From positions 248,001-312,000 of the forward strand of contig NW_021835987.1 of NCBI RefSeq assembly GCF_006345805.1: a stretch of 64,000 nt of DNA, written 5' to 3'. Every line of letters starts with the position of its first letter. The first letter of the stretch is position 1. Positions 29,967 to 51,297 of the stretch are shown in pieces. The position numbers were made by a program, and so were the translations under genes. The notes under the pieces were generated by a model. It ran no database searches, was not told the DNA's origin, and was given only the letters and a program-made list of their open reading frames with translations. The DNA comes from Octopus sinensis (Eukaryota).

Positions 29967-29999
<33 letters not shown>

Positions 30000-30284
30000 C
30001 GAGCATGAGTGCGTGTATGTCTACAGTGATAGATCCGAGTGTTTCATTTATTCACAATTTGATTTATTAATTTCACCGGACTATGAATACCTATAATGGT
30101 GCCTACGCAGTCGTCCACACTCATCACTGCCCTTATCAGTGGTTACAGGGAAATGATTGCGGAGTCCCTTTTTGCCTTATGCCTTTCCTTGTCCATTTTG
30201 TATTTCTTCCTTTGTTTTGCCGTTTTTTTCTCGGCTTTCAATACTCCCTCAGTCCTAACTGCCACTAGCAAGCTTTCCTCGCTT

Positions 30285-30552
30285 TAGCATATCTGTCTCA
30301 TCAAGTTCCCGAGTTCGATACCTACGCAGTCTTGCACACTTATCAGTGCCCTTCCTCCATTTGCCCTCTTCGTGTAGAGACGATCAGTGTCTGCACGTGG
30401 ATGATGGCCTCCATGCATCATTAGACGCTTCCTTGTCTTCCTGTCCAACTCTTATCTCTCCTCCTCTGTTCAGTGAAGGATCCCAGCGCCATACCGAACT
30501 ACTGCGGCTGCGCATAAGTTCATGGCCGAAATTATGTTCCAGGTATTCAGCT
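30285..30552 (-). mobile_element. R4/Dong-like RT C-terminal fragment (mirror copy at about 50305-50580 +)
   Basis: SKLNTWNIISAMNLCAAAVVRYGAGIL...LDRKTRKRLMMHGGHHPRADTDRLY..NGGRALISV. Confidence 0.75.
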
Positions 30553-30554
30553 TT

Positions 30555-30609
30555 GAAGCCAATACTATTACTACTGCTGCTGCTATTACTACTACTACTA
30601 CTACTACTG

Positions 30610-30644
<35 letters not shown>

Positions 30645-30815
30645 GCTGCTGCTGCCGCTGCTGCTGCTGCTGCTGCTCCTGCTCCTACCACTACTACTAC
30701 TACTGCTGCTGTTGCTACTACTACTACTACTACTATTACTACTACTACAACTACTACTACTGATATTACTACTACTACTGCTGCTGCTGCTACTGCTGCT
30801 ACTGCTGCTACTACA

Positions 30816-30846
<31 letters not shown>

Positions 30847-30850
30847 TGAT
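30555..30850. repeat. (TAC)/(TGC) compound microsatellite abutting the C exon 2 acceptor
   Basis: Direct inspection. Confidence 0.95.
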
Positions 30851-30861
30851 TATTATTTCAG

Positions 30862-31040
30862 ACAGCCAATGGATTAAAGCATATGCCATACCAATGAATG
30901 CTGGTTCGAGAGTCTATGAGTCATTCATGAATATAGGAAATACTTCATCCTGGAAAGTGGACAAATGCAATGGTACCTTCTGTCCTAACTTCTTCCGACA
31001 TCCCTTCCTTGATTTCTGGGAACATCTTCCAATTAATGAG
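30862..31040 (+). CDS. Copy C exon 2
   Basis: TTTCAG/GTACGT, 179 nt: SQWIKAYAIPMNAGSRVYESFMNIGNTSSWKVDKCNGTFCPNFFRHPFLDFWEHLPINE. Confidence 0.85.
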
Positions 31041-31104
31041 GTACGTAGCCATATGCATACACATACACTAATATATATATAATAATAGTAATAATCGTGA
31101 CGTA

Positions 31105-31360
31105 TATTTGCCATTTAGATATGGCTAACCCCTAAGGGTGGATGCTACTGAAGTTTGTAGCCCCAGGAGGACACCTCCCAGAAACTCGAGTCCGTGTGTA
31201 TCATAAGTTGAAGACGGGAAGGATGGCTTCCCTTTGCAAATACTGATAGGGCACAGAAAATGTGTCTATAGCCAGCGGAAGGAGGTGTCCTCCTGGGGCT
31301 ACAAACTACAGTAGCATCCACCCTTAGGGGTTAGCCATATTTAAATGGCAAATATACGTC
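31105..31360. mobile_element. Foldback MITE (mirror copy at about 49690-49945)
   Basis: Near-perfect self-complementary ~250 bp: ATATTTGCCATTT...AAATGGCAAATAT. Confidence 0.8.
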
Positions 31361-31948
31361 ACATGTTTTGTAGCTACCGTTTATAACACGCTCTAAGATT
31401 TATTATTAATAGTAATAATGATTAACAGATATTTAGATCAATTCAATTGCTTGTTACATTTTTGACCTACAAAAATTATTTATGAGGAAGGCGAAACAGT
31501 GTTGAATAAAATTCTATCCGCGGAAAACCGCAGTAATAAGAAAAGATTATCACAGACAAAAGAATCTCCTTTTGGGTTTTTTTTTTATTTGATTTTGATT
31601 TTCCAGTTTCAGCTAATGAGCTGTGGCCATGCTGGGGCACCGCCATTTAATGAGTAAACGGGAAACAAAATCGATGAAATCAGCTTACCATACATGACTG
31701 ATTTCAGCAGAAAGTAAAGCACGTGGACCTCGGTGGTACTTGGATTCAAAGCTGAATTACTTTGTCATTCTTCTTGTGAGATGGCAAGATTGAGTAACAA
31801 ACAAAACCTTATGGGAACAGACGAACCAGGGACCTGTCAGAGCCCAGATCAAGAGCAGTCATGGATCATGGCTAGTTCAAAATATAAATTTATTTCGTCA
31901 CTGTATTTATTGCGGAGATGTGTCAATTCATGAAATGTTTTACTCTAG

Positions 31949-32003
<55 letters not shown>

Positions 32004-32299
32004 GGGGGGTGGGGGGGGTGTAATAGAGCTAAAAACGGATGGATTATTTGGGTATAACGACACACGTTTCCTTTGCAGAAGATTGTTATTATAGACACAT
32101 TACGTCATGCAACATGGAATGGAATAGGTTTGAGATCGTATGTAATATTATGAAATAAGTTTGAATAACATTACCAATTCTGTAGGTCATACTGTATTAG
32201 AGGTTAATTAGCGATGTATGCCACATAGTATCATGGTAATATATGAATTTTTCAAATGAAGGGGTATCAAATATGTTATTTGATTCATTTAGAGATATT

Positions 32300-32670
32300 A
32301 ATCGTCTGGAAGCCGTTTAGCGACGTGCAACCGAGAGAATACCCTCCATCAGGCATTTGCCATATTCTGAACGCCTTACTTCTCTGGGCATGGACACATT
32401 GAAACATTTTTTCACGCTGAGAGTTGCTGAAGCATGGAACAAACTGCCGGCATCGGTTGTTAGTTGTCGGAGCACTGCATCCTTCAAAACTTCCATGCTT
32501 TCTGAGATTCCCCAACACTACACCTGATTTTCTCCCCTCCATACACACGCAAACATGTATCTGACTCATACACTGTTTGCTTTCCAGACATTTGTACTTT
32601 ACTGCATATACTTTATACGCACTTTCTGACAAGTTGTGGTGCACCTGAGCACTGTATACATTGACTTCAT
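32300..32670 (+). mobile_element. CR1-like LINE 3' end, internally deleted
   Basis: RRATERIPSIRHLPYSERLTSLG...FFTLRVAEAWNKLPASVV. Confidence 0.7.
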
Positions 32671-32980
32671 TATTATTATTATAGCAAGATACGGATTAGG
32701 TGATAGGCCAATCAAAATCATCAATTTTGCCTGTTATGCTTTACTGTTTACACTGCGTGTGTGTCAGTGTGTCTCAGTGTGTGCGTGTGCGTGTGTGTGC
32801 GTTTGTGTGTGTGTGTCAGTGTGTCAGTGTGTGCGTGTGTGTGTGTTTGTGTATTTGCGTGTGTGTGTGTGTGTGTGTGTTTGTGAGTTTGTGTGTGTGT
32901 TTGTGTGTGTGTGTGTGAGTGTGTATGTGTGTGTACCCGTGTGTGTATATGTGCGTGCTACATGTTCATATCTTTTGCAG

Positions 32981-33135
32981 GTAAAACTGGTAATCTATAA
33001 AAACGGAACCGATTCGAAAACAATCATATTTGATGGACGAAATACAACACTTAACACCTGGTTCTCTCACGAAAACTTGAAAAGTTCACCATGGGACGAC
33101 CTAGCATCCGACCCCAATCCTAAGTACTTAATGAG
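32981..33135 (+). CDS. Copy C exon 3
   Basis: TTGCAG/GTGAGT, 155 nt, open: VKLVIYKNGTDSKTIIFDGRNTTLNTWFSHENLKSSPWDDLASDPNPKYLM. Confidence 0.87.
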
Positions 33136-33892
33136 GTGAGTATAGTATGTCTATATATATTTTATGCTGGGGTTTTATTCCGTTACGTAGAGACTTATCA
33201 TGTTACAAAAAAAATTGCCTTTCGTAGGCAACAGATAGAAAGTTTAACCTATACATTTAGATGCTAAACTTTCTGGAGACGAACAACATATGCCCAGGTT
33301 TTCAACAGTATATCTTCATTTGTTATGATATACAGAATGCTAATTTGAACTAATACTGCTGCCGTCTGTAAAGATGAAATATATCCGGCGTTCCGTCCAG
33401 GAGGGGAACCTATACGCCAAGAAACCTTGAAAGCGGCCCTTATGAGCCAGGCATGGCTCGAGAAGGAACAACCAATCGCCGCTGCAAGAGGCTATAACTC
33501 TATTAATGGTACATTTCTGTATTTTCAACACTACACGACCAAATGAAATGCTTTCTCGTTACGAACAGCAGAGTTACCAGAATTTCACATTAAGTAGCAT
33601 ATTTTAAAGTGGGAAGCACGAAAATGTATTTTCACCTTAAAATGTACACTCTTTTATTCTTTTACTCGTTTCAGTCATTTGACAGCGGCCATGCTGGAGC
33701 AGTTTTAGTCGAGCAAATCGACCCCATGATTTATTCTTTGTAAGCCTAGTACTTATTCTATCAGTCTCTTTGGCCGAACCGCTATGTTACGGGAAAGTAA
33801 ACACACCAGATTCGGGGGGACAAACACAGACACACAAACACACATACACACACATACACACACACACACACACGCACACACACACACACACA

Positions 33893-33943
<51 letters not shown>

Positions 33944-34081
33944 TTAATCTAAACATAAAAGCACAAAAAAACACAACAACGCGACATATATTTACTTGGG
34001 CAAGTGTTTTCTACTATAGCCTCGAGCTCACCAAAGCCTTGTGAGTGGATTTGGTAGATGGAAACTGAAAGCAGCCCGTCG

Positions 34082-34128
<47 letters not shown>

Positions 34129-34397
34129 CTGTATGTTTGTCTGTGTTTTTCCCTCCAACATCGCTTGACAAAAGATGCTGGTGTGTTTACGTCCCCGTAA
34201 CTTAGCGGTTCTGCAAAAGAGACCGATAGAATAAGTACTAGGCTTACAAAGAATAAGTTCTGGGGTCGATTTGCTCGACTAAAGGCGGTGCTCCAGCATG
34301 GCCGCAGTCAAAATAACTGAAACAAGTAAAAGAGTAAAGGAGTAAACGTTTAGGCTTTCATATTCTGAAACCCATCCAACTTTTATTAACTCCACAG

Positions 34398-34558
34398 AAA
34401 CGATCGTCCCTTCGGTATATCAAAAGGGGCTAAGTGTACAAAGATGAGTGGCTGGTTCATTATTGATCCCCGTCCGACAAATTGTGGGTTTGCTTACAAA
34501 GATCATTCTCCTTCAGTCCGTTATTCTGATAAAAACTCGAAAGTTGTTTGGAGAAACG
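34398..34558 (+). CDS. Copy C exon 4
   Basis: CCACAG/GTGAGT, 161 nt, open: [53 protein letters not shown]. Confidence 0.87.
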
Positions 34559-34600
34559 GTGAGTGATATTTTTATAATTTGTGTGTGTGTGTGTGTTTTG

Positions 34601-34642
<42 letters not shown>

Positions 34643-35090
34643 CGTATGTGTGTGTGTGGGCGTGTGCACGAGTGTGTGTGTGTGTATGCGTATGTGTGTG
34701 TGTGGGCGTGTGCACGAGTGTGTGTGTGTGTGCGTATGTGTGTGTGTGGGCGTGTGCACGAGTGTGTGTGTGTATGCGTATGTGTGTGTGTGGGCGTGTG
34801 CACGACTGTGTGTGTGTGTGCGTATGTGTGTGTGTGGGCGTGTGCACGAGTGTGTGTGTGTGTGTGTGCGCGCGTGTATATGTGTGTGTATGTGCGTATT
34901 TATGTGTGTGAGCCTTGATTCAACTTATTTATTATTAAGAGCATCCCAACCATGACCCTCCTGTATGTTTCCCACTCAACGATGTAAAGATTCGGCTGCT
35001 ATTTCTAGTAATTCCAGTGAACGCGCATGAAGACCTTCCACGATTTATTTCCATTCCTTTGGTTATTGATGTTGTTATTGTTACTTCCAG

Positions 35091-35140
35091 GCTATACATT
35101 AGCAGACTCCATGGCCGTATTCATCCGCCTGAGGCAGTAG
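35091..35140 (+). CDS. Copy C exon 5 (terminal)
   Basis: TTCCAG acceptor; GYTLADSMAVFIRLRQ-TAG. Confidence 0.85.
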
Positions 35141-35171
35141 AATTTATCCAGCACATGATACTATAGTTGTT

Positions 35172-36012
35172 GTTCACGCCCATCCAATCCTGCTGACCAC
35201 CACTAGTGATCTCAGTAGGTCAAGTATTACCTGTTAATAAAGAATCCATATAAATATTCTAAGTTGTTCACGTCCACCCAATCCTGCTGACCACCACTAG
35301 TGATCCCAGTAGGTCAAGTATTACCTGTTGATAAAGAATCCATAGAAACATTCTGTGTTGTTAACGTCCATCCAATCCTGCTGACCACCACTAGTGATCC
35401 CAGTAGATCAAGTATTACCTGTTAATAAAGAATCCATATAAATATTCTAAGATGTATACGTCCATCCAATCCTGCTGACCACCACTAGTGATACCAGTAC
35501 GTCAAGTATTACCTGTTAATAAAGAAACCATATAAATATTCTAAGATGTTAACGTCCATCCAATCATGCTGACCAAAACTAGTGATACCAGTAGGTCAAG
35601 TATTACCTGTTGATAAAGAATCCATAGAAATATTCTGTGTTGTTAACGTCCATCCAATCCTGCTGACCACCACTAGTGATCCCAGTAGATCAAGTATTAC
35701 CTGTTAATAAAGAATCCATATAAATATTCTAAGATGTATACGTCCATCCAATCCTGCTGACCACCACTAGTGATACCAGTACGTCAAGTATTACCTGTTA
35801 ATAAAGAAACCATATAAATATTCTAAGATGTTAACGTCCATCCAATCATGCTGACCACCACTAGTGATACCAGTAGGTCAAGTATTACTTGTTAATAAAG
35901 AATCCATATAAATATTCTAAGATGTTAACGTCCATCCAATCATGCTGACCACCACTAGTGATACCAGTAGGTCAAGTATTACCTGTTAATAAAGAATCCA
36001 TATAAATATTCA
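35172..36012 (+). repeat. 94-bp tandem array (about 9 units) 3' of copy C
   Basis: Units start at 35172, 35266, 35360, 35454 and onward; 7 of 9 contain AATAAA. Confidence 0.95.
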
Positions 36013-36062
36013 AAGTCCGTCTTTCGAGTTGTGATTGGCTTCTCTGACCCCACAGACTGAGC

Positions 36063-36094
<32 letters not shown>

Positions 36095-36760
36095 TTCTAG
36101 TTCTTACTAAATGCTTTGCACCTTAGGTAAGTGTCTTCTACGAAAGCCTTCTGAGTGGATTAAGTAGGCGGGAACCGAAAGAAACATGTCGTTTATGTGT
36201 GTGTGTGTGTGTGTGTGTGTTTATATGTATGTGTGTGTGTGTGTTTTTATGCGTGTGCTTGCTACCCTCCCCACCAACATCGCTTGATAAACGATGCTGG
36301 TGTGTTTACGTCGCCGTAACTTTGTGGGTCGGCAAAAGAGACCGATAGAATAAGTACTAGGCTTACAAAGAATAAGGTCTGAAGACGATTTCTTCGACTA
36401 AAGGCGATGCTCCAGCATGGCCGCTGTCAAATAACTGAAATAAATACAAGAAATGAATAATTAAACGGCTAGTATTCTGATTTCGAATTTAAACCTTAAG
36501 TTCGGGATGAGGTCGATCTTATAGCAGTTTATATATATTGTTAAAATCTTTTATCCTTTATGGAAAATGATGTAAACCTCTGTAGAGACAACTGGAATTT
36601 CATAAGTATAAGTGACTAATATCAAAGAAGTACCAACGGTATCCCCTAGTATATATACATATATAGAACTTCCAATATCGTTAGTCGATATAGAGCAAAA
36701 CTGGTGTACACTTGGATAAAATTTATCCCTAGGATAAAACAACCTATTTTCATACAAACT

Positions 36761-36819
<59 letters not shown>

Positions 36820-37126
36820 AAGCGCAATGGACCATTGGTTCAGGCAGCTGACTGGCGGTTGTAGGATCGCGGTTTCTATTCCCAGACCGGGCTTTGTGAG
36901 TGTTTATTGAGCGAAAACACCTAAAGCTCCACGAGGCTGCAGCAGGGGGGTGGTGGCGGTCCCTGCTGTACTCTTTCGCCATAACTTTCTTTCACTCTTT
37001 CTTCTGTTGGCCTGCTTTCTTAGCCAGTGGGGTGGCGTCATTTGAAGGGTAAAACAATGCGAAGCACATTGTGACCAGCGATGTGTAGCAACATGTGATA
37101 GCTTGGTCGGTCACGGTGACCACGGT

Positions 37127-37164
<38 letters not shown>

Positions 37165-37418
37165 TATAATAAATCTCTGAACGAAATATAACAGTGACTG
37201 CACGACCCGTGAGGTATATTTGCCATCTCAATATGGCTAACCACTAAGTGCTGGTGTTACTGTAGCTTGTAGCCCCAGGAGAACATGTACTCCAGCTGGC
37301 TTTAGGCACCCTTTCTGTGCCCTTAAGGTATTTGCACACAACAATTCCACTATTACTACTCACAGTAAGACACATACACACACACACACACACACACAAA
37401 AGAGAAAACATCACTTAC

Positions 37419-37579
37419 CGTGGTTCCATACGACTTTCATTTTTGTGTCAGAATAACGGATTGAAGGAGAATGATCTTTGTAACCAAACGAATAAGATGG
37501 CGGAAGCTCATCGATAACCAGCCAGCCGCTTACTTTTGTACTTGTGTTGCCTTTTGTTATATAGAAGCTATATTTTCCT
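37419..37579 (-). CDS. Copy E orphan exon 4 (cysteine-less)
   Basis: TCACAG/GTAAGT, 161 nt, open: GKYSFYITKGNTSTKVSGWLVIDELPPSYSFGYKDHSPSIRYSDTKMKVVWNH. Confidence 0.7.
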
Positions 37580-38258
37580 CTGTGAAGTTAACAAAAGTTG
37601 GTTGGGTTTCAGAATATGAAAATCTAAACATTTATGAAATATATATCAATATAGGCGCAGGAGTGGCTGCGTGGTAAGTAGCTTGTTTACCAACCACATG
37701 GTTCCAGGTCCAGTCCTACTGCGTGGCACCTTGGGCAAGTGTCTTCTACTATAGCCTCGGGCCGACCAAAGCCTTGTGAGTGGATTTGGTAGACGGAAAC
37801 TAAAAGAAGCCTGTCGTATATATATATATATATATATAATAATAAATATTAGGGAATAAATCCAAATTTACAGGGAAAAAATCAGATTTAGGATTAAATC
37901 GATTTTATAGTAAAATATTATAAAATATTATTCGAGACAAAACCACTATTTTGCAAAACAAACAAGGAAAAACTTAATCAATACATAAAATTTTAATAAA
38001 TAGTCAAAAAAACCGCCACTACAATCGTTTCTTGTCTTGATCGACAATCTTCAGGTGGACTTCCAATAATTCAGTGTCAATTGTATATTTTATTTATCTG
38101 TATGAGTGTGGGTGTGTAAATATTGTTGTATATATCGAGTTTAGTGAGTATATATATGAGTATATGTGAGGGAGTATATGTATCTGTTGTGTGTGTGTGG
38201 TGTTTTTGTGTGTGTGTGTGTTTGTGTGTGAATGTTTTGACACTGAATTATTGGAAGT

Positions 38259-38298
38259 CCACCTGAAGATTGTCGATCAAGACAAGAAACGATTGTAG
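38259..38298 (+). ncRNA. Hammerhead-like motif in inverted repeat (mirror copy at about 38020-38060, - strand)
   Basis: CCAC-CUGAAGA-UUGUC-gaucaa-GACAA-GAAA-CGAUU-GUAG. Perfect 5-bp stem II; stem I has a mismatch. Confidence 0.45.
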
Positions 38299-38389
38299 TG
38301 GCGGTTTTTTTTTACTATTTATTAAAATTTTATGTATTGATTAAGTTTTTCCTTGTTTGTTTTGCAAAATAGTGGTCTTGTCTCGAATA

Positions 38390-38474
<85 letters not shown>

Positions 38475-38844
38475 ATGTGTGTTGTGTGTCTGTGTTTGTC
38501 CCTCTAGCATTGCTTGACAACCGATGCTGGTGTGTTTATTTCCCCGTCACTTCGCGGTTCGGCAAAAGAGACCGATAGAATAAGTACTGGGTTTACAAAG
38601 AATAAGTCCCGGAGTCGAGTTGCTCGATTAAAGGCGGTGCTCCAGCATGGCCGCAGTCAAACGACTGAAACAAGTAAAAGAGAGTATGTCCGCAATACAC
38701 AATTGAATCGGTCAGTGTTCAAAATAGCCTTCAGTGTATCATACTTAAACTATATATCTGTAGCCTACGAAAAGTGATTCTTAATATTATATTTCTTTAC
38801 ATAACGAAACGAAAGAAAATAAGAAAAAAGATATGTAAATATAC

Positions 38845-39008
38845 TTATTTAGCTCCACTGAGAAACGCAATTTTGTGGCTGAAGCTAGATCGTCCCATGG
38901 TGAACTTTTCAAATTTTCCAGAGAGAACCAGGTTTTAAGGGTTGTATTTCGTCCATCAAATATCATAGTTACCACATCTGTTTGGTTTTCGTAGAGCACC
39001 AGTTTCAC
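38845..39008 (-). CDS. Copy E orphan exon 3
   Basis: TTGCAG/GTATAT, 164 nt, open: VKLVLYENQTDVVTMIFDGRNTTLKTWFSLENLKSSPWDDLASATKLRFSVELN. Confidence 0.7.
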
Positions 39009-39185
39009 CTGCAAAAGAAATGTTCATTTCATTAGTTGGTTCATAAACTTTAGGACATTAAAATGTTAACTTATATATTTATTAAAATGATAATTCTAAT
39101 TACATACATACATATACTATATCATTCTATGTATATAACATAATAATACACGCAATTATTAAAAAACTTGAATATAAATTATTAT

Positions 39186-39216
<31 letters not shown>

Positions 39217-39227
39217 CATACATACAT

Positions 39228-39288
<61 letters not shown>

Positions 39289-39582
39289 CATATCGACATC
39301 TCTCTCTTCCTCTCTCTCAATATATGTATATATATATGTGTGGTGTGTGTGTGTGTGTGTGTGTGTGTGTCATATATATGACATGAACTAAGATTCACCT
39401 GATATCCACGCACATTACGGATTTTACTGTAATGATCCCGGGAATATGGACTAAGTTCGTACGAAATATGCAACTTGCGGAAATACGCGTAGCGAGGGAT
39501 TAAAATACTTATAAATCCCATTCATGGATTATTATGACTATAACTATGTTTATCCTACTTTGAATCGGAACACCTCGGTACA

Positions 39583-41414
39583 ATTCCATAAAACGCTGTT
39601 GCAGGTTCGAATCATTGGACGACAGCCGACGCAATGAAATAGCAGTTTTTATATGAGTACTCAAAAAACGAGCTTTTGTGTGTGTACGTGTGTGCATGTG
39701 TGTGCGTGCTTGCGTCTGTTTGTGCGCGTTTGTGTGTGTGTGTGTGTGCGCGCGCGTGTATTTGTATACTTAAACTTCGAACACCAAGAACAAGTGTTCA
39801 ACACCGTTTTGGTGGATAAAATTCGTCTATTTAAGCTACCATTAGTTACACGTTCAGATGAACTTCTTAATATCTGAACAATTTTGAAAGCTAATTGCCC
39901 GCAAGGAATGACATTCGGCTGTATTGTGGAGGAAAACACGAAAAATCTCAGGAAAAATTTCCTGAACTTACATGACATCGATTCTATGACATATAGAATC
40001 AAGTAATCAAGGGAAGTTACTCTCTAATGACAACTTTTGATTGATTACCTCCCTTGGATTTAAATACTTTCTTGGATGGTGAATTTGCATCATATCATAT
40101 TATGTTATATTCTTGGTATATGTGGAGGGAATTCCTCGGGGTAGGGGTGGCATGTGTGGAGTTCATGTGTTGTATATATTGAATGTTCACGCATCGAGAA
40201 AGAAACTAACCTGCTGGGATTGTTGGCATGGGAGTCTCCTCTTTGACATGTCGGAGTATGAAATATTGCTTGTGTATGTAGCGAGAGAAGGTCTCATCCC
40301 TAATATTTAAGATATTATCTGTTGACTGTATGATATTTAGCTTTTCAGTGATACAGAGCTAATCATTGTAAAGTATACTAGCCATCTCAATATGGCTAAC
40401 CACTAAGGGTGAGTGTTACTGTAGCTTGTAGCCCCAGGAGATCATCGTCTCCAGCTGGCTTTAGGCACCCTTTCTGTGCCCTTATGGTATTTATGGTATT
40501 TGCAAATACCTTAAGAGCACAGAAAGTGTGCCTAAAGCCAGCTGGAGACAATGATCTCCTGGGGCTAAAAGCTACAGTAACACCCACCCTTAGTGGTTAG
40601 CCATATTGAGATGGCTAGTATACTTTACAATGATTAGCTCTGTATCACTGAAAAGCTAAATATCATACAGTCAACAGATAATATCTTAAATATTAGGGAT
40701 GAGACCTTCTCTCGCTACATACACAAGCAATATTTCATACTCCGATATTTCAAAGAGGAGACTCCCATGCCAACAATCCCAGCAGGATAATTTCTTTCTC
40801 GAAGAGTGAACATTAAATATATACAACACATGAACTCCACACATGCCACCCTACCCCGAGGAATTCCCTTCACATACACCTAGAATATAACATAATATGA
40901 TATGATGCAAATTCACCATCCAACAAAGTATTTAAATCCAAGGGAGGTAATCAATCAAAAGTTGTCATTAGAGAGTACCCTCCTTGATTACTTGTTTCTA
41001 TATGTCATAGAATCGATGTCATGTGAATTCAGGAAATTTTTCCTGAGATTTTTCGTGTTTTCCTCCACAATAGAGCGGAATGCCATTCCTTGCGGGCAAT
41101 TAGCTTTCAAAATTGTTCAGATATTAAGAAGTTCATCTGAACGTGTAACTAATGGTAGCTTAAATAGACGAATTTTATCCACCAAAACGGTGTTGAACAC
41201 TTGTTCTTGGTGTTCGAAGTTTAAGTATACAAATACACGCGCGCGCACACACACACACACACAAAAACGCGCACAAACAGACGCAAGCACGCACACACAT
41301 GCACACACGTACACACACACAAGCTCGTTTCTTGAGTACTCATATAAAAACTGCTATTTCATTGCGTCGGCTGCCGTCCAATGATTCCTACCTGCAACAG
41401 CGGTTTTATGGAAT
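39583..41414. repeat. ~1.8-kb imperfect palindrome centred on a foldback MITE
   Basis: Arms of about 915 bp; centre GGTATTTGCAAATACC at about 40495-40510. Confidence 0.9.
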
Positions 41415-41698
41415 ATCTGCGTGTTTGCATACGTAGATATTAACAAGTGAAACCATGGTACGTAGGTAATCGTTTTTTATTCCGTATATTTTCATTTGTT
41501 TCGCTTAATTTTACATTTTGGCGTTTTGCTGAGATTTTGCTTGAGAACACACCCTTCGTTTAATGGCGATTTGACGTCTATGTTTAGCATATTAGGTGTC
41601 CTCTTGATTTTGTATGTACGCAATTTTTAATCTTCGGATGTTTTAAATATGCTAAGCCACTGGTTTCAATTGATTAATATCAATTTCTACTCTTATTA

Positions 41699-41788
<90 letters not shown>

Positions 41789-41946
41789 TGTAGGTCCCGG
41801 GTTGAGTCGGGGTTAACCACAGTAAATAAGGTACTCAATACATTGCAGCTTCCTGAAGATTTCATCTGAATGAAACAGTTCTAGTCCTGTAGAAGCTCCT
41901 TCTATAAAATAATATATATATATATATATATATAATTGTGTGTGTG

Positions 41947-42197
41947 TGAGGTATATTTGTCATCTCAATATGGCTAACCACTAAAGGTGGATGTGTTGCT
42001 GTAGCTTGTAGCCCCATGAGAACATCTACTCCAGCTGGCTTTAGGCACGCTTTCTGTGCCTTTAAGGTATTTGAAAATATCTTAAGAGCACCGAAAGCAT
42101 GCCTATTGCCAGCTGGATGAGATGTTCTCCTGGGGCTACAAGCTACAGTAACACCCACTCTAGTGGTTAGCCATATTGAGATGGCAAATATACCTCA
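41947..42197. mobile_element. Foldback MITE, same family (half copy 37213-37336; another copy about 40375-40625)
   Basis: Palindromic, with the same termini. Confidence 0.8.
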
Positions 42198-43181
42198 CGT
42201 TGTCGTTCAGTTACTGTTTTATACTTCGTTCAGAGATTTATTGTATATATATATATGTATATTTTTATTTCTTTTAATAATATATTATACGACTAACGCA
42301 CGCACCCTCTTAAGTAAGATTGATCTGTATATCAAGTTCGCCTTGATATTAACTCTCACGCGCCACTCTGCTCTTTCTTCTTTCTTTCTTTCTTCTATCC
42401 CATCCCCTTTTCGTCTTTTTCCCTCACTTAACTTGTCTCCTCCTCTCTCTCATTCATTCTCATTCTCTCTCTCCCCCTCACCATTCTTCATGGTCTCCTC
42501 GCACCATTCCCTTTCTCTCCTTCCTCTTGCTCCTCCTCCCCCATTCCCGTCGTCCATCTGCGACGATACTTCCGCCGTAACTGCTAACGTCTTTCTCGCC
42601 CGCCTTTTAAGGCTACTGGACGACTTTTCCTGCTCTCTCGTCGTTCACAAAAAATTAGCGTTTGCAATACTTTTTTCGTTCGGCGTCAACAGCCCTTCTT
42701 ATCTTGTTCTCCCTGTCCTGTCTTTTACTATTATATTTTTTTACTGTTTATATATATATTTTTTTAACTGTTTATATTTTTGTACTGTCGTTACTGTCCT
42801 CGTTTTTTTTTACCGTTTTCTTATTTTTTACCATTTTTTTACCCCTCTGCGAAAAGATCTCAGAATTTTAATTGATTTGCTTTTCGCAGGAAGGAAAGTT
42901 TCTTGTCGAAGATACGTCTCGCTTTATCCTTCGAAACGTAGAGTAGATGAAACCTTAGCGACTGAAGAAGGGTTTTTTTCGTTCTGTTAACTGTCCTGTA
43001 CTCCATTTTTTTGTTGTTTTTAAAAAAATGCCCTGTTCCTTTGGTTTGTGTCTATGTTTGCGTTTCTCTATGTGTTCGACGTCCCTTTGGTGTCCTGTAC
43101 TCATATATGCGTGTATATGTACATGTAGAGATAGGTACGTACATATATGTTTATATATATGCATATGTTTTATTTCTTTTA

Positions 43182-43219
<38 letters not shown>

Positions 43220-43221
<2 letters not shown>

Positions 43222-43530
43222 CGTGGTCACCGTGACCGACCATGCTATCACATGTTGCTACACATCGCTGGTCACAATGTGCTTCGCATTGTTTTAGCCT
43301 TCAAATGACGCCACCCCGCTGGCTAAGCAAGCAGGCCAACAGAAGAAAGAGTGAAAGAAAGTTATGGCGAAAGAGTACAGCAGAGATCGCCACCAGCCAC
43401 TGTCAGAGCCTCGTGGAGCCTTAGGTGTCTTCGCTCAATAAACCCTCACAAAGCCCGGTCTGGGAATCGAAACCGCGATCCTACAATCGCGAGTCCGCTG
43501 CCCTAACAAATGGTCCATTGCGCCTCCACA
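43220..43530 (-). mobile_element. tRNA-derived SINE family 3 (mirror copy at about 36815-37130)
   Basis: Minus strand begins with a tRNA-like GGAGGCGCAATGG...GGTTTCGATTCCCAGACC head. Confidence 0.65.
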
Positions 43531-44284
43531 CACACCACACACATATATATAGTTTGTACGGAAAGAGGTTGTTTTTCCTAGGGATAAATTTTATCCAAGT
43601 GTACACCAGTTTTGCTCTATATCGACTAACGATATTGGAAGTTCTATATATGTATATATACTAGGGGATACCGTTGGTTCTTCTTTGATATTAATCACTT
43701 ATACTTCTGAAATTCCAGTTGTCTCTACAGAGGTTTACGTTATTTTCCATAAAGGATAATAGATTTTAACAATATATATAAACTGCTATAAGATCGACCT
43801 CATCACGAACTTAAGGTTTAAATTCGAAATCAGAATACTAGCCGTTTATTATTCTTTTCTTGTATTTATTTCAGTTATTTGACAGCGGCGCTGCTGGAGC
43901 ACCGCCTTTAGTAGAACAAATCAACTTCAGGCCTTATTCTTTGTAAGCCTAGTACTTATTCTATCGGTCTCTTTTGCCGACCCACAAAGTTACGGGGACG
44001 TAAACATACCAGCATCGTTTATCAAGCGATGTTGGTGGGGAGGGTGGCAGGCACACGCATAAAAACACACACACACACATACATACAGTAAGTGACACAC
44101 TCACACACACACGACATGTTTCTTTCGGTTCCCGCCTACTAAATCCACTCACAAGGCTTTGGTAGAAGACACTTACCTAAGGTGCAACGCATTTAGTATG
44201 AACTAGAACATAAACAACAACAACAACAACAACAGCTCTGTCTGTGGGGTCAGAGAAAGCCAATCACAACTCGAAAGACGGACT

Positions 44285-44845
44285 TCGAATATTTATATGG
44301 ATTCTTTATTAACAGGTAATACTTTTCCTACTGGGATCACTAGTGTGGTCAGCAGGATTGGATGGACGTGAACAACTTAGAATATTTATATGCATTCTTT
44401 ATTAACAGGTAATACTTGACCTACTGGGATCACTAGTGGTGGTCAGCAGGATTGGATGGACGTTAACAACTTTGAATATTTATATGGATTCTTTATTAAC
44501 AGGTAATACTTGACCTACTGGGATCACTAGTGGTGGTCAGCAGGATTGGATGGACGTGAACAACTTAGAATATTTATATGCATTCTTTATTAACAGGTAA
44601 TACTTGACCTACTGGGATCACTAGTGGTGGTCAGCAGGATTGGATGGACGTGAACAACTTAGAATATTTATATGCATTCTTTATTAACAGGTATACTTGA
44701 CCTACTGGGATCACTAGTGGTGGTCAGCAGGATTGGATGGACGTTAACAACTTTGAATATTTATATGGATTCTTTATTAACAGGTAATACTTGACCTACT
44801 GGGATCACTAGTGGTGGTCAGCAGGATTTGATGGACGTTAACAAC
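44285..44845 (-). repeat. 94-bp tandem array (about 6 units) 3' of copy D
   Basis: Reverse complement of the same unit. Confidence 0.93.
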
Positions 44846-44876
44846 AACAACTATAGTATCATGTGCTGGATAAATT

Positions 44877-44925
44877 CTACTGCCTCAGGCGGATGAATAC
44901 GGCCATGGAGTCTCTAATGTATAAC
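44877..44925 (-). pseudogene. Copy D exon 5, 1-bp deletion
   Basis: Reverse-complement match to C exon 5 ending in DSMAVFIRLRQ-TAG; 49 versus 50 nt. Confidence 0.72.
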
Positions 44926-45155
44926 CTGGAAGTAACAATAACAACATCAATAACCAAAGGAATGGAAATAAATCGTGGAAGGTCTTCATACGCGTTCACT
45001 CGAATTACTAGAAATAGCAGCCAATCTTTACATCGTTGAGTGGGAAACATAAACAGGAGGGTCATGGTCGGACGCTTTTAATAATAAATCAGTTGAATCA
45101 ATGCTCACACACATAAAACGCACACACACACACAAAATAAAAAAATATCACTCAC

Positions 45156-45317
45156 CATTGTCCCATAAGATTTTCTTGTTTTTATGAGAATAACGGATTG
45201 ACGGAGAACGACGTGTGTAACCGAACGAACACGCCGGCGGATGGTCATCAGTAACCAACCAGCCAGTCATCTTGAACATCTATTTATTTTTTTCGATATA
45301 TGAAGAGACGATCTTTC
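45156..45317 (-). pseudogene. Copy D exon 4, frameshifted in its 5' part
   Basis: CCACAG/GTGAGT; 3' part open: GWLVTDDHPPACSFGYTRRSPSIRYSHKNKKILWDN. Confidence 0.72.
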
Positions 45318-45368
45318 CTGTGGAGTTAATAAAAGTTGGATGGGTTTCAGAATATGGAAACCTAACAT

Positions 45369-45835
45369 TTACTCTTTTACTTGTTTCAGTCATTTTGACT
45401 GTGGCCATGCTGGAGCACCTCTTTCAGTCGAGCAAATCGACACCAGGACTTATTCTTTGTAAGCCTAGTACTTATTCTATCGGTCTCTTTTACTTGTTTC
45501 AGTCATTTGACTGTGGCCATGCTGGAGCACCTCTTTTCAGTCGAGCAAATCGACCCCAGGACTTATTCTTTGTAAGCCTAGTACTTATTCTATCGGTCTC
45601 TTTTAACTTGTTTCAGTCATTTTCACTGCGGCCATGCTGGAGCACCTCTTTTCAGTCAGTCGAGCAAATCGACCCCAGGACTTATTTTTGTAAGCCTAGT
45701 ACTTATTCAATCGGTCTCTTTTACTTGTTTCAGTCATTTGACTGCGGCCATGCTGAGCACCGCCTTTCAGTCGAGCAAATCGACCCCAGAACTTATTCTT
45801 TGTAAGCCTAGTACTTATTCTATCGGTCTCTTTTG
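45369..45835 (-). repeat. Four tandem copies (about 118 bp) of the SINE family 2 3' end
   Basis: TTACTTGTTTCAGTCATTTGACTG...TATCGGTCTCTTTT repeated four times. Confidence 0.85.
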
Positions 45836-47202
45836 CAGAACCGCTAAGTTACGGACGTAAACACACCAGCATCATTTGTCAAGCGATGTTTGGGGGAGAA
45901 ACCAGACAAACATACAGAAACACACCAACACACCACCCACAATATATATACATATATATATAGTATATATATATATATATATAGCACATACGACGGCTTC
46001 TTTCAGTTTCCGTCTACTATTCCCGAGGCTATAGTAGAAGACACTTGCCAAGTATATATAGTCGCGTTGTTGTATATTTTGTGTGTTTCATGTTTAGATT
46101 AACTGTATATATATATGTTGTGTGTGTGTGTGTGTGTGTGTGTGTGGTGTGCGGGTGTGTGTGTGGTGTGGGTGTGTGGTGTTGTATGTGTGTGTGTGTG
46201 TGTTTGTGCTGTATGTCCCCAACACGCTTGACAAACCGATGCTGCTGTGTTTACTTTCCCGTAACATAGCGGTTCGGCAAAAGAGACCGATAGAATAATA
46301 CTAGGCTTAAAAAGAATAAGTCCATGGGGTCGATTTGCTCGACTGAAGGCAGTGCTTCAGCATGGCCGCTGTCAAATAACTGAAACAAGTAAAAGAATAA
46401 AAGAGTGTACATTTTAAGGTGAAAATACATTTTCGTGCTTCCCACTTTAAAATATGCTACTTAATGGAAATTCTGGTAACTCTGCTGTTCGTAACGAGAA
46501 AGCATTTCATTGGTCGTGTATGTTGAAAATACAGAAATGTACCATTAATAGAGTTATAGCCTCTTGCAGCAGCGGTGGTTGTTCCTTCTCGAGCCATACC
46601 TGGCTCATAAGGGCCGGTTTCCCGGTTTCTTGGCGTACAGGTTCCCCACCTGACGGGACGCCTATCCGTCGCAGGTGAGCTGTAAGATTTAGAAGGAAAG
46701 AGTGAGAGAAGTTGTGGCGAAGAATCAGCAGAAGTTTCGCCATTACCTTCTGTCGAAGCTGCGTAGAGCTTAGGTGTTTCGCTCATAAACCCACATATCG
46801 CCCGCTGAGAGTCGAACCCGCCGACCCCTCGACCGCGAGTCCGCTGCTCTAACCACTAGGCCATGTGCCTCCACAGCAGCGGCGGTGGAATAGCTAAATC
46901 TATTTCTTGCTTTAGCAAGCAATCACAGCGGTGCTGTAGTTAGCCCGAATGCCTGGATATATTTCATCTTTACAGACGCAGCAGTATTATTTCAAATTAG
47001 CATTCTGTATATCATAACAAATGAAGATATACTGTTTGAAGCCTGGGCATATTTGTTCGTCTCCAGAAAGTTTAGCGTCTAAATGTATAGGTTAAACTTT
47101 ATATCTGTTTGCCTACGAAAGTTATATGTTTTGTACCATGATAAGTCTCTACGTAACGAAGAAAGAACAAGCATAAAAGATATATAGATATACTATACTC
47201 AC

Positions 47203-47354
47203 GTCATTGAGAAATACAGATTGGTGGCGGAAGCTAGGTCGTCCCATGGTGAACTTTTCAAATTTTTCTGAGAGAACCCAGGTTTTAGGGTTGTATTCGT
47301 CCATCAATATCATAGTTACGAAGCGATTTCGTTTTTATAGATTACCACTTTTAC
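47203..47354 (-). pseudogene. Copy D exon 3, frameshifted
   Basis: TTGCAG/GTGAGT: VKVVIYKN...KNLKSSPWDDLASATNLYFSM, with several 1-bp indels. Confidence 0.72.
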
Positions 47355-47374
47355 CTGCAAAAAAATGAGCATGT

Positions 47375-47414
47375 AGCACACACATATACACCCGGTACAC
47401 CCACACACATACAC

Positions 47415-47451
<37 letters not shown>

Positions 47452-47987
47452 CACACAAATATACACAAACACACACACGCAAATACACAAACACACACAC
47501 CACAAATACACAAACACACACACACGCACACACACCACGCCGCGCACACACCCCACGCACCGAACACCCAACACACAACCACACACACACACAAAACCAC
47601 ACAACAAAAACACACACCCCTGACACCACACACAAACAACCACACACACACAAACACACCACACAAACACACTGCACAACACACACCAAACCACACACAA
47701 CACAAACACACCCACACACACACCCCTGACACACACGCGCAAACACCCACACACAACCACACACACAAACACACACACACCACCCACAACAAACACACAT
47801 GGACACAAACACACACACACACACACACACACACGCACCACACAAACGCACACACACACACCAACACACACACACAAACACACACCACACACTGTCACAC
47901 AACACACACACAAACACACACACACGCCACACACACACAGAAACACAAACCCACACACACAAACACACACACACAAACACACACCCA

Positions 47988-48039
<52 letters not shown>

Positions 48040-48190
48040 CAACACAAACACCCACACCAAACCCCCACACACCACCCCCACACTGTACACACCACACACA
48101 AACTCACATACACACACACAAACTCACACACACACAAACGCACACACACAACCTCACCACACACACTGTCACACACTGACACCCACTGAC
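47375..48190. repeat. Degenerate (CA)n microsatellite
   Basis: Direct inspection. Confidence 0.95.
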
Positions 48191-50007
48191 ACACACGCAG
48201 AGTAAGAACAGTAAAGCATGTGGACCTTGTGGCCACTTGGACTCAAAGTTAATATTTTGTTATTCTTCTTGTGAGATGCCAAGTTCGAATAACAAACAAA
48301 GCTGTTAGACTAATGTTCACTCTCATCATTCTTTTGATCGAAACGAATTTGCATAACAGTCGAAATTTAATGATTTTGATTGGCCTATCACCTAATCCGT
48401 ATCTTGCTATTATAATAATAAATGAAATTAATGTATACGTGCTCAGGTGCACCACAACTTGTCAGAAAGTGCGTATAAAATATATGCAGTAATGTAGAAA
48501 TGTCTGGAAAGCAAAGAGTGTATGAGTCAGACATAAATAATTTTTTATAAACAAACGCAGAAGTGGCTGTGTGGTAAGTAGCTTGCTACCAACCACATGG
48601 TTCCGGTTCAGTCCCCACTGCGTGGCATCTTGGGCAAATGTCTTCTACTATAGCCTCGGGCCGACCAAAGCGTTGACTGGATTTGTAGACGGAAACTGAA
48701 AGAAGCCCGTCGTAAATGTTTATATATTGTGTGTGTGTGTGTTTGTGGTTGTGTGTCTTGTTTTGTCCCCCTAGCATTTCTTGACAACCAATGCAAAAGA
48801 GTAGAAGAGTAAACCCGAAAGATTTGCAGTTACGGAGCAAAAGCTACTATGGAAGGCTCATAGTATAATAAACTGTACAATAACTCTATATAATATATAT
48901 CATAATGATATTTAACCTCCGATTTTAAAGCGACAATTTTTGAATGTATATAAAGACCGAAAAATGATGAGCTAACCTCGGGCTGAGGTCATGTATTTCG
49001 CTCAAACCGCATTGTTGATTAAAATTTCTTCATTTGTGTATTAAGGCTATTATTGGTTTCATTTAAGGGCGAATGTCTTAATATGTCAACATTTCCAAGC
49101 CGATTACCTGGAAGGAGGGTGTTAGTCTCCATTGTGGATGAAACCACGAAATATCTAGAGTAAAACATTCCATGAATGACACATCTCCGCAATAAATACA
49201 GTGACGAAAATAAATTTCAATTTTGAACTAGCCATGATCCAGACTGCTCTTGATCTGGGCTCTGACAGGTCCCTGGTTCGTCTGTTCCCACAAGGTTTTG
49301 TTTGTTACTCAATCTTGCCATCTCACAAGAAGATGACAAACTAATTCAGCTTTGAATCCAAGTTACACCGAGGTCCCACGTGCTTTACTTCTGCCGAGCT
49401 CAATAAAACTTTTACAGTCAGATTGTATGCTATTTCAGCACATCGATTTTGTTTCCCATTTACTCATCCAAACCCCAAAAGGAGATCTTTTGTCTGTGAT
49501 AATCTTTCTTATTACTGCGGTTTGCCGCGGATAGAATTCTATTCAACATTGTTTCGCCTTCCTCATAAATCATTTTTGTAGGTCAAAAATGTAACAAGCA
49601 ATTGAATTGATCTAAATATCTGTTAATCATTATTACTATTAATAAATAAATCTTAGAGCGAGTTTATAAACGTAGCTACAACACACCGTAACGTATATTT
49701 GCCATTTAGATATGGCTAACCCTAAGGTTGGATGCTACTGTAGTTGTAGTCCCAGGAGGACACCTCCGTCCGCTGGCTATAGACACATTTTCTGTGCCCT
49801 ATCAGTATTTGCAAAGTGAAGCCATCCTTCCCGTCTTTAACTTATGATACACACGGACTCGAGTTCTGGGAGGTGTCCTCCTGGGGCTACAAACTACAGT
49901 AGCATCCACCCTTAGGGGTTAGCCATATTTAAATGGCAAATATACGTCACGATTATTACTATTATTATATATATATTAGTGTATGTGTAATGCATACGGC
50001 TACGTAC

Positions 50008-50185
50008 CTCATCAATTGGAAGATTTCCCAGAAATCAAGGAAGGGATGTCGGAAGAAGTTAGGACAGAAGGTACCATTGCATTTGTCCACTTTCAGGTTG
50101 AAGGACTTCCTATATTCAGGAAATGAATTATAAATTTTCGAACCAGCTCTCATTGTTAGGGCATATGTTTTAATCCATTGTCTGT
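50008..50185 (-). pseudogene. Copy D exon 2, frameshifted
   Basis: TGTCAG/GTACGT, 178 nt: RQWIKTYALTMRAGSKIYNSF...KVDKCNGTFCPNFFRHPFLDFWE, with three 1-bp indels. Confidence 0.75.
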
Positions 50186-50239
50186 CTGACATAAGTATAA
50201 GTATTATTTATTATTATTGTTCTTTTTTATTAATTGTTT

Positions 50240-50273
<34 letters not shown>

Positions 50274-50888
50274 GTAGTAAGTAGTTAGTAGTAGCAGCAG
50301 CAGTAGTAATAGTATTGGCTCAAATCTGAATACCTGGAACATAATTTCGGCCATGAACTTATGCGCGCCGCAGTAGTTCGGTATGGCGCTGGATCCTTAA
50401 CTGAACAGAGGAGGAGAGATAAAGTTGGACAGGAGACAAGGAAGCGTCTAATGATGCATGGAGGCCATCATCCACGTGCAGACACTGATCGTCTCTACAC
50501 GAAGGAGGCAAATGGAGGAAGGGCACTGATAAGTGTGCAAGACTGCGTAGGTATCGAACTCGGGAACTTGATGAGACAGATATGCTAAAGCGAGGAAAGC
50601 TTGCTAGTGGCAGTTAGGACTGAGGGAGTATTGAAAGCCGAAAAAAACGCAAAACAAAGGAAGAAATACAAAAAGGATAAGGAAAGCATAAGGCAAAAAG
50701 GGACTCCGCAATCATTTTCCCGTAACCACTGATAAGGGCAGTGATAGGTGTGGACGACTGCGTAGGCACCATTATAGGTATTCATAGTCGGTGAAATAAA
50801 TAAATCAAATTGTGAATAAATGAAACACTCGGATTCTATCACTGTAGACATACACGCATTCATGCTCGCTCTCACACACACACACACA

Positions 50889-50920
<32 letters not shown>

Positions 50921-51069
50921 GCCATACATACATACACACACAAAGAGTCTCATATGTATGTCATTATTCAGTTACTTTTTCAAATTTCTTTCCATAGAGA
51001 AATAATCATTTTCACCTACATCCAAGCTCCTTCATTGGAATTTCAAGATCAACAACAGGTATTTTTGTT

Positions 51070-51297
51070 TGCATGTATGTATGTTGTATGTATATATGTA
51101 TGTATGTAATGTATATATGTATGTATGTATGTGTATGTATGTATTATATGTATTGTGTTATGTATGTATGTTGTGTGTATGTTATGTATGTGTGTATGTA
51201 TGTATATATGTGTGTATGTGTGTATGTATGTATGTATGTGTGTGTATGTATATATGTATGTATGTATGTATGTTTGTATGCAGGCATGTACGTATGC

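Follow-up and report, generated by a model that had tools for sequence, protein, structure and literature searches.

An inverted gene pair in Octopus sinensis whose coding patches differ more than the introns around them

Genes whose exons diverge faster than the introns between them are a paradox known chiefly from the toxins of snakes and cone snails and from immune genes of vertebrates. Here we describe the same contrast in an uncharacterised family of secreted proteins from a cephalopod, Octopus sinensis, within a 64,000 nucleotide (nt) long stretch of contig NW_021835987.1 (positions 248,001 to 312,000; hereafter the window, from the first letter of which all coordinates are counted unless a contig is named). 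Its subject is a pair of paralogues, C on the forward and D on the reverse strand, which self-BLAST places in tail-to-tail inverted orientation on the arms of an inverted duplication. The span considered, 30862-50185, is bounded by the opening bases of exon 2 in the two copies, that of C (+) on the left and that of D (-) on the right.

In snake venom-gland families, the crotaline PLA2 isozymes, such "accelerated evolution" was reportedly described by Nakashima, Ogawa, Ohno and colleagues in 1993-1995, and three-finger toxins, serine proteases and Kunitz inhibitors are other venom families in which it is seen. The octopus genes resemble these families in being tandem secreted duplicates with introns several-fold more conserved than exons, with conserved signal or framework parts, and with exon synonymous sites that outpace introns (in PLA2 genes intron K is about 1/4 of Ks). 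They differ in belonging to an unrelated, uncharacterised cephalopod family, known here from sequence alone, and in that the contrast was measured on an inverted pair and checked against orthologues of a sister species. Conus peptides are said to combine a conserved signal and conserved introns with a hypervariable mature-toxin exon in which dS is raised (Conticello et al. in 2001). Like them, the octopus family is molluscan, secreted and tandemly expanded, with hypervariability in a part of the coding sequence and a raised synonymous rate there; in contrast, its proteins are 295 residues long and comprise a folded domain, with 4 framework cysteines in exons 2-4 and variable patches distributed over three exons. 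For major histocompatibility complex (MHC) class I and II genes, Cereb, Hughes and Yang reportedly described in 1997 introns homogenised between sequences whose exon diversity is kept by balancing selection. Introns are more similar than ligand-binding exons there too, and conversion with selection is a candidate cause, but in the MHC balancing selection acts on the alleles and loci compared; C and D, by contrast, are paralogues between which no conversion since speciation was seen.

Exon-restricted segment switching has been formalised as ASSET (PMC2711939): short exon segments are radically changed, neighbouring segments and introns remain more than 85% similar, the change is restricted to exons, the fold is kept and the mechanism is unknown, all of which is paralleled here. 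Segments switched in this way are expected at the molecular surface or in loops that bind the target. The octopus pair is an instance of this venom PLA2, three-finger-toxin and ASSET-type pattern in an uncharacterised cephalopod family. None of the tests reported below implies that the products are toxins.

Six copies or fragments of one gene, designated A-F, were located in the window by tblastn with coding segments taken from the arm alignments, where these segments were first recognised by canonical splice sites flanking open stretches. The gene is comprised of five coding exons, because exon 4 ends at a GTRAGT donor kept in all five copies, copy A lacks an in-frame stop at that point, and a short conserved segment ~530 nt 3' of exon 4, encoding GYTLADSMAVFIRLRQ*, agrees with the C-termini of database family proteins (…ADSMAIFIRLRQQN). 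On the same three grounds exon 4 is ruled out as the terminal exon; the original prediction, made from the bare sequence, had taken it as the last of four and missed exon 5. The product of exon 1 is a predicted signal peptide followed by a cysteine-containing Apple/PAN-like module. The arms, both copies and a third fragment lying between them are positioned as follows.

29732-37174 (+): left arm, carrying C exons 2-5 (self-BLAST)
30862-31040 (+): C exon 2, 179 nt, preceding intron in phase 1 (TTTCAG acceptor, GTACGT donor, tblastn, homologous protein models)
32981-33135 (+): C exon 3, 155 nt, sharing 96% identity with O. vulgaris protein P0016
34398-34558 (+): C exon 4, 161 nt, variable throughout, holding the loop D-x-x-P-x-x-C-x-F-x-Y (GTRAGT donor at its end, no stop codon)
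35091-35140 (+): C exon 5, short terminal exon (match to family protein C-termini)
39008-37419 (-): copy E, a gene fragment in the spacer, tail-to-tail with C, with exons 3 (39008-38845) and 4 (37579-37419) only
51152-43172 (-): right arm, carrying D exons 2-5; D exon 1 lies further upstream (self-BLAST)
44877-44925 (-): D exon 5, 1 single-base gap relative to the intact allele
45156-45317 (-): D exon 4, exceeding its C counterpart by one codon, with 2 single bases missing compared with the intact allele
47203-47354 (-): D exon 3, 3 single-base gaps relative to the intact allele
50008-50185 (-): D exon 2, with 2 single bases missing and 1 inserted compared with the intact allele
52717-53016 (-): D exon 1, signal peptide and Apple/PAN-like module, broken by single-base indels; intact in contig L002 (2441-2740)

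The arms are separated by a spacer of ~6 kb. Related loci used for comparison include L001 from O. vulgaris, L002, an O. sinensis contig with a clean D allele, L003, a second O. sinensis contig with C, and L007 (O. sinensis contig VCDQ01006013.1). The left arm is collinear with L001 14053-21513 and is 98.7% identical to L003; a counterpart of copy E is also present in L001. In exon 2 of C, nt 1-90 form a hypervariable patch and the last 89 nt a framework (CNGTFCPNFFRHPFLDFW); in exon 3, a conserved core (FDGRNTT..WFS..NLKSSPWDDL) is placed between two variable patches, at codons 3-15 and at the 3' end.

Divergence between C and D was measured by alignment of individual segments with tandem repeats masked by TRF, and the clean L002 allele was used for all D counts, the window copy of D being left unrepaired. 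A whole-arm five-way MAFFT alignment was discarded, as microsatellites and misalignment inflated its non-coding divergence to ~10%, and a greedy BLAST chain dropped segments. Repeat-masked non-coding sequences differ at 165 of 3556 positions (4.6%), compared with 90 of 545 (16.5%) in exons 2-5 pooled (Fisher p=1.2e-20, odds ratio 4.1). The excess is unevenly distributed. Exon 4 is the most extreme, with 50/161 differences (31%; p=3e-25 against non-coding DNA), followed by exon 3 with 23/155 (15%; p=2e-6) and exon 2 with 16/179 (9%), 15 of which lie in nt 1-90 (p=3e-4). The first half of exon 2 accordingly exceeds the introns (p=2.5e-5) and the second half does not do so significantly; this half and exon 5, with a single difference in 50 nt, are as similar as introns. 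Whichever two paralogues are compared, exon 4 is the segment that has diverged most, and the fourth exons of C, D and E are mutually equidistant, at 30-32%. Since intron divergence barely climbs towards the exons (6.0% within 25 nt of them and 4.5% beyond 400 nt, at best a weak gradient), the step at the splice sites is abrupt.

All four counts of the original prediction hold in these alignments. Introns around the exons, said to be more than 90% identical, are well above that value. The first ~30 codons of exon 2 do carry 12 amino-acid differences (14 nonsynonymous and 1 synonymous nt by NG86) and the last 29 codons one; exon 3 differs at both ends, in the patch at codons 3-15 and in the last ~10 codons. 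The match of 19 out of 37 residues at the 3' end of exon 4 was reproduced, although two of these 37 residues (GE) are read-through into intron 4. The contrast repeats when O. vulgaris C is compared with O. sinensis D (85/545 in exons, 162/3496 in non-coding sequence) and again with the second O. sinensis contig, and is therefore not an artefact of the window assembly; assembly chimerism, which the original prediction had named as a possible refutation, is excluded by this recurrence.

Indels of D, treated in that prediction as real, look like errors of the consensus. Private 1-nt deletions number 45 in the window D and 0-1 in each of C_win, C_Ov and D_Os (C of the window and of O. vulgaris, and D of O. 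sinensis). No substitutions separate L002 from the window over 54627-53127 and 45127-43360, but across the D gene body (45127-53127) the two differ by 1-5%, and nearly all differences, when polarised with C, are private to the window D; what look like substitutions in it are in many cases paired shift errors. Each of the five D exons is open in L002, as are D exons 4-5 in O. vulgaris. Because of the 45 private deletions and the existence of an intact D allele, the frameshifts of the window D are best read as local consensus errors, almost certainly so, and not as pseudogene decay. Conversion of D by C in the window was considered for the same differences and rejected; they are evenly spread and error-like, and show no patterns shared with C.

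Wherever it can be judged without confounding, the excess strongly favours replacements. Nonsynonymous divergence between C and D reaches 0.17-0.19 against 0.046 in introns, 3.6 times the intron value over all exons and 3.6-5 times as a range. In the first 30 codons of exon 2, the ratio of nonsynonymous to synonymous divergence (dN/dS, NG86) is 4.2 with dS of 0.055, about the intron rate, and the nonsynonymous count alone (14/71) exceeds introns at p=6e-6. Changes were further polarised by parsimony with E, B and A as outgroups. The C branch before speciation carries 22 nonsynonymous changes where ~4 are expected (p=3e-10) and 5 synonymous where ~1 is expected, and the D branch 25 where ~9 are expected (p=1e-5) and 8.7 where ~2.5 are expected, so that a synonymous excess is found on both branches alike (p=0.004 each). 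Positions that differ between C and D coincide with columns variable in the whole family, where the top residue has a frequency of 0.54 compared with 0.75 elsewhere (p=5e-8). RNA-editing-like or other mutational bias was rejected, as transitions make up a fraction of 0.46 in exons and 0.50 in introns.

Exons 3-4 are fast at synonymous sites too. In order to avoid artefacts of path averaging, pure synonymous differences were counted only in codons with a conserved amino acid, with 0 found at the 26 sites of exon 2, 4 at the 23 of exon 3 and 4 at the 14 of exon 4. For exons 3-4 together, 8 at 38 sites compare with 1.7 expected from the intron rate (p=3e-4), and the synonymous distance between C and D is 0.21-0.24, 4-5 times that of introns. 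Among C, D and E, the synonymous distances of exons 3-4 follow the order of intron distances, C-D < D-E < C-E, and are ~3-4 times larger. Amino-acid-level selection on point mutations cannot yield such an excess. It requires either a process other than point mutation (templated replacement or a locally raised mutation supply) or a homogenised background.

More recent changes are of a different composition. The C orthologues of O. sinensis and O. vulgaris have 16/161 differences in exon 4 (9.9%) against 2.6% in introns (p=1e-5), 15 of them nonsynonymous and 1 synonymous (dN/dS 4.4, NG86), and 12 of the 16 fall within one 36-nt window corresponding to the loop D-x-x-P-x-x-C-x-F-x-Y (permutation p=5e-5). 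Since the split of these species the synonymous rate has equalled the intron rate, and the nonsynonymous changes of C exon 4 are the sole excess. A third C-type copy, C2, is located in L007 (41719-46901) and may be either a paralogue or a very old haplotype. It differs from C by 2.2% in exon 2 and 5.8% in exon 3, near neutral and with the C-derived patches shared, but by 16% in exon 4, where about 22 nonsynonymous and 2-3 synonymous changes were read off the alignment. In introns it is 3.8% distant from C, compared with 3.6% for D and 2.9% for O. vulgaris C. The loop of O. vulgaris C is D/E-like, C2 has part of the changes, and the window C has those and more; at many exon 4 sites the four sequences show three states (patterns aabc 9, abac 5). 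Because the three C-type copies form a graded series and the same sites are found in three states, the loop changes are, as aligned here, stepwise and recurrent substitutions at the same positions.

With these values the locus falls within the range of the venom families, in which Ka/Ks is near or above 1 (here 1.02 overall, with the ratios above 4 just given for the exon 2 patch and the orthologue exon 4). Discrete segments as in ASSET are also encountered: 15 of 16 changes within 90 nt in exon 2, 12 of 16 within 36 nt in the orthologue exon 4, and two patches in exon 3. Different from ASSET, however, the exon 4 loop has an intermediate in C2, which suggests stepwise substitution over a single switch.

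We favour, with about an even chance of its being right, diversifying selection on the hypervariable patches combined with a mixed mutational input that includes some conversion or segment replacement. C and D would be recent tail-to-tail duplicates in a tandem, palindromic cluster, with a common background ~4-5% diverged that takes in the introns and exon 5 as well as the framework codons in the second half of exon 2 and the exon 3 core. Against this background, short coding patches at family-wide variable positions would have turned over many times faster than neutral DNA, driven by diversifying (positive) selection on a putative ligand-contacting surface of the C-terminal domain. Selection is proposed as the driver because replacement rates exceed the neutral yardstick, omega is above 1 in clean comparisons, hits are recurrent, and the positions concerned are hypervariable throughout the family. 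Raw material would be mostly point substitutions, accumulated stepwise in the same loop, to which multi-nucleotide or templated events, i.e. short-tract gene conversion or a "segment switch" among paralogues, may have been added; the latter are suggested by the synonymous excess in exon 3-4 patches, by conflicting site patterns among copies, and by a promoter and exon 1 that A and D share at 90-95% identity while the remainder of these two genes cannot be aligned.

Several results weigh against this reading. Taken by exon, dN/dS (NG86) between C and D is 0.81 in exon 3 (dS 0.20, dN 0.16) and 0.92 in exon 4 (dS 0.43, dN 0.40), and over exons 2-5 it is 1.02, a value near 1 because the synonymous sites of exons 3-4 are likewise 4-5 times more diverged than introns; the synonymous counts involved are small. 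On an AlphaFold model of the domain, 26 variable sites are in secondary structure and 29 in coil, without enrichment in loops (Fisher p=0.75). A search of the window, of ~230 kb of paralogue-rich DNA from O. sinensis and O. vulgaris (L001-L007) and of 35 annotated proteins from three species returned no donor for a single patch of C or D. In addition, C may be a 5'-truncated, dying copy, for its exon 1 is absent from the window and no annotated O. sinensis protein corresponds to it, and ongoing selection on C is thus questionable; in O. vulgaris, C exon 1 sits 4.9 kb upstream of exon 2. A search of the literature by gene identifiers and keywords returned nothing on function or expression of the family. 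The diversifying selection proposed in the original prediction is thus upheld in part: an exon-confined, replacement-biased excess is there, with dN/dS of ~4 in the exon 2 patch and the orthologue exon 4, but the ratio for the whole of C and D is not above 1 and synonymous sites in exons 3-4 are fast as well.

A possible, though rather unlikely, explanation is that the duplicates are old and that their background has been homogenised by arm-to-arm conversion in the palindrome, with selection for distinct proteins sparing the coding patches in the manner of MHC genes. Patch synonymous sites would then record the true age of C, D and C2. The inverted repeat formed by C and D, with its ~6-kb spacer, suits such a process, as do the raised synonymous distances of exons 3-4, which keep the order of the introns, and the equidistance of exon 4 in C, D and E. 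The introns of C, C2, D and O. vulgaris C stand at near star-like distances (2.9-3.8%), whereas exons are strongly hierarchical, and informative intron sites conflict (19 vs 11 vs 6); the cluster is, on these alignments, reticulate. On the other hand, the comparison of C_win and C_Ov with D_win and D_Os gave no sign of exchange between C and D since speciation: C and D are told apart in both species by 438 sites, and no exchange pattern has more than 2. Neither did arm-to-arm concerted evolution show up in distances, the two C orthologues (C_win-C_Ov 2.6-2.9%) being closer than C_win and D (3.6-4.6%). For homogenisation, numerous tracts would have to stop no more than a few bases from the patches, with the ~70-nt core between two exon 3 patches homogenised as well, and intron divergence has no clear rise beside the protected patches. 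It also leaves unexplained the bursts in exon 4 between true orthologues and between C and C2, which share exons 2-3, and the absence of synonymous differences at 26 sites indicates that exon 2 is not old.

Point mutation and positive selection alone after a recent duplication, without conversion or segment replacement, would suffice for the exon 2 patch, with its high dN/dS and dS at the intron rate, for the 15 nonsynonymous against 1 synonymous changes of the orthologue exon 4, for the stepwise intermediates of its loop and for the similar transition fractions of exons and introns. It cannot, however, lift synonymous divergence in exons 3-4 to 0.2-0.4 with introns at 0.05, nor does it account for the synonymous excess on both branches or for an overall omega of ~1, and as the whole explanation we consider it distinctly improbable.

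Exon-limited conversion from other paralogues, taken to explain all diverged tracts with no selection for diversity, is very unlikely. Divergence is indeed patchy with synonymous sites included, the cluster offers many paralogues and fragments (E and F among them) as possible donors, and other parts of the gene are mosaic, namely the promoter and exon 1 shared by A and D. Donors were looked for with the patches in the window, allowing up to 3 mismatches, by running every exon of C and D with tblastn on L001-L007 as well as the window, and among 35 proteins from three species. The best non-orthologous match to D exon 4 in this material is at the level of 58% amino-acid identity, C exon 3 patches occur in C-type copies only, and the C exon 4 loop is unique, so that this proposal of the original prediction has gained no direct support. 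Neutral tracts should not halt at the splice sites flanking three exons, and the recent changes are nearly all nonsynonymous.

Assembly chimerism or plain decay under relaxed constraint in pseudogenes, which might be suspected from the poor, frameshifted consensus of the window D gene body, from C without exon 1 and from the frameshift in B, is largely refuted and barely credible, as the contrast recurs with the clean D of L002, with C and D of O. vulgaris (L001) and with L003, in which C exons 3 and 4 are identical to those of the window, as neutral decay cannot outpace introns, and as C exons 2-5, the five D exons of L002 and copy A exons 1-4 are open reading frames.

The encoded proteins form an Octopus-expanded secreted family of ~295 residues, with a signal peptide, an Apple/PAN-like module from exon 1 and a beta-rich domain of ~180 residues. 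The spliced product of copy A, used as query, has 24 protein matches, all from Octopus (sinensis, vulgaris, bimaculoides) and all "uncharacterized", the complete ones being ~290-296 residues long; precomputed Pfam domains are absent from these 24, although UniRef labels some as "Apple domain-containing". Pfam gave no match for single exon peptides or for the spliced A and C proteins (for copy A none at E<=1, including PAN_1 or PAN_4 in its N-terminal module), and a sequence search of PDB gave none either; a distant homologue, P0107, carries PAN_1 upstream of the shared domain. When a profile built from 21 members was run against 1.84 billion representatives, 1106 proteins were found. The ~300-residue architecture is also present in Aplysia, Nucella, Potamilus and Crassostrea, while the C-terminal domain occurs in amphioxus proteins beside ZP, Sushi, C-type lectin, TSP1, F5/8-C, SUEL-lectin and PAN domains, and in one myxobacterial protein.

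An AlphaFold model of the exon 2-5 region built on an alignment of 106 sequences reached a predicted local distance difference test (pLDDT) of 89 and a predicted TM-score (pTM) of 0.87, and is the model on which variable sites were mapped. An earlier model of full-length P0025 with 21 sequences had pLDDT of 61, a low-confidence N-terminal module and weak Foldseek matches. With the better model, the best Foldseek matches in PDB are fibrinogen-related domains, weak ones (TM 0.39-0.43, E>=0.03), and none is above TM 0.45. In this respect, and as a secreted, diversified molluscan multigene family, the octopus proteins recall the fibrinogen-related proteins (FREPs) of molluscs, which are diversified immune lectins. 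They differ from FREPs in the absence of a Pfam Fibrinogen_C match, in a TM of ~0.4 with that E-value, in lacking immunoglobulin superfamily (IgSF) domains and in the absence of evidence for somatic diversification; without the Pfam match and with TM <0.5, they are not assigned to fibrinogen-related domains. With its 1106 homologues, no match in Pfam and a confident predicted structure that no PDB entry fits above TM 0.45, the exon 2-5 domain is a candidate for an undescribed extracellular domain family.

The remaining copies in the window are the following.

6842-1393 (-): copy A, exons 1-4 intact (6842-6542, 4998-4820, 3710-3547, 1553-1393), 91% identical to O. vulgaris protein P0001
12788-19446 (+): copy B, exon 1 ~12788-13074, exon 2 13641-13819, exon 3 17030-17189, exon 4 18971-19131, exon 5 19391-19446
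54527-54661 (+): fragment F, a lone B-type exon 3 at the edge of a 35-kb direct duplication (self-BLAST, tblastn)

Exon 5 of copy A was not located within the window. Copy B has a 1-nt gap in exon 3 (17030-17189) which shifts the frame, and there is no ATG (~12788) where A and D start. Promoter and exon 1 of A and D (6504-8110 and 52675-54339) are 90-95% identical, while downstream introns are unalignable and exons 2-4 differ by 20-52%; within exon 1 of this pair, too, divergence is patchy. The direct segmental duplication has an offset of ~35 kb (19686-27099 and 54692-62287, also 17000-17203 and 54479-54685, 92-98% identical), and its right-hand copy opens with fragment F, B intron 3 and exon 4 being deleted there.

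The window has ~37% GC and abounds in microsatellites and in repeats resembling short interspersed elements (SINEs) and miniature inverted-repeat transposable elements (MITEs). MITE-like perfect hairpins lie in introns and spacer of the pair, at 31129-31340, 40367-40623 and 41945-42193, and the palindrome centre is near 40490, marked by an inner inverted repeat (39583-41414). Arrays of a 94-nt tandem repeat follow directly 3' of exon 5 in both arms (35074-36125 and 44282-44880), with ~11 and ~6 copies. An AT-rich satellite (GC 21%) with 9/12/15-nt periodicity occupies 1872-4000, within intron 3 of copy A. Upstream of the left arm, ~10 kb that hold C exon 1 in O. vulgaris (L001 ~4006-14053) are replaced in the window by 2.6 kb (27100-29732); an open reading frame of 301 lysine-rich codons in the replacing segment (28932-29837, +) possibly comes from a retroelement.

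A further and bolder proposal, which we regard as unlikely, joins three elements: a germline-encoded hypervariable recognition repertoire of octopuses, directed at immune targets or prey, deeply divergent haplotypes, and a new metazoan extracellular fold. Loops comparable to complementarity-determining regions may be turned over by an exon-targeted diversification process. As the intron difference between C and C2 (3.8%) is larger than that between O. sinensis and O. vulgaris (2.9%), these two could be alleles that predate the species split, a trans-species, MHC-like polymorphism. The ~180-residue C-terminal domain, judged from its model, may be a new and widespread metazoan extracellular fold.

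In practical terms, the window D is a warning that local consensus errors can make an intact gene look like a pseudogene. For the study of exons that evolve faster than introns, the locus provides a clean cephalopod example, with an inverted pair, orthologues in a sister species and a third close copy, in which selection, gene conversion and segment replacement could be told apart by population and haplotype-resolved data. For octopus biology, the pattern flags this family as a candidate for interaction between organisms, be it in venom, immunity or fertilisation.

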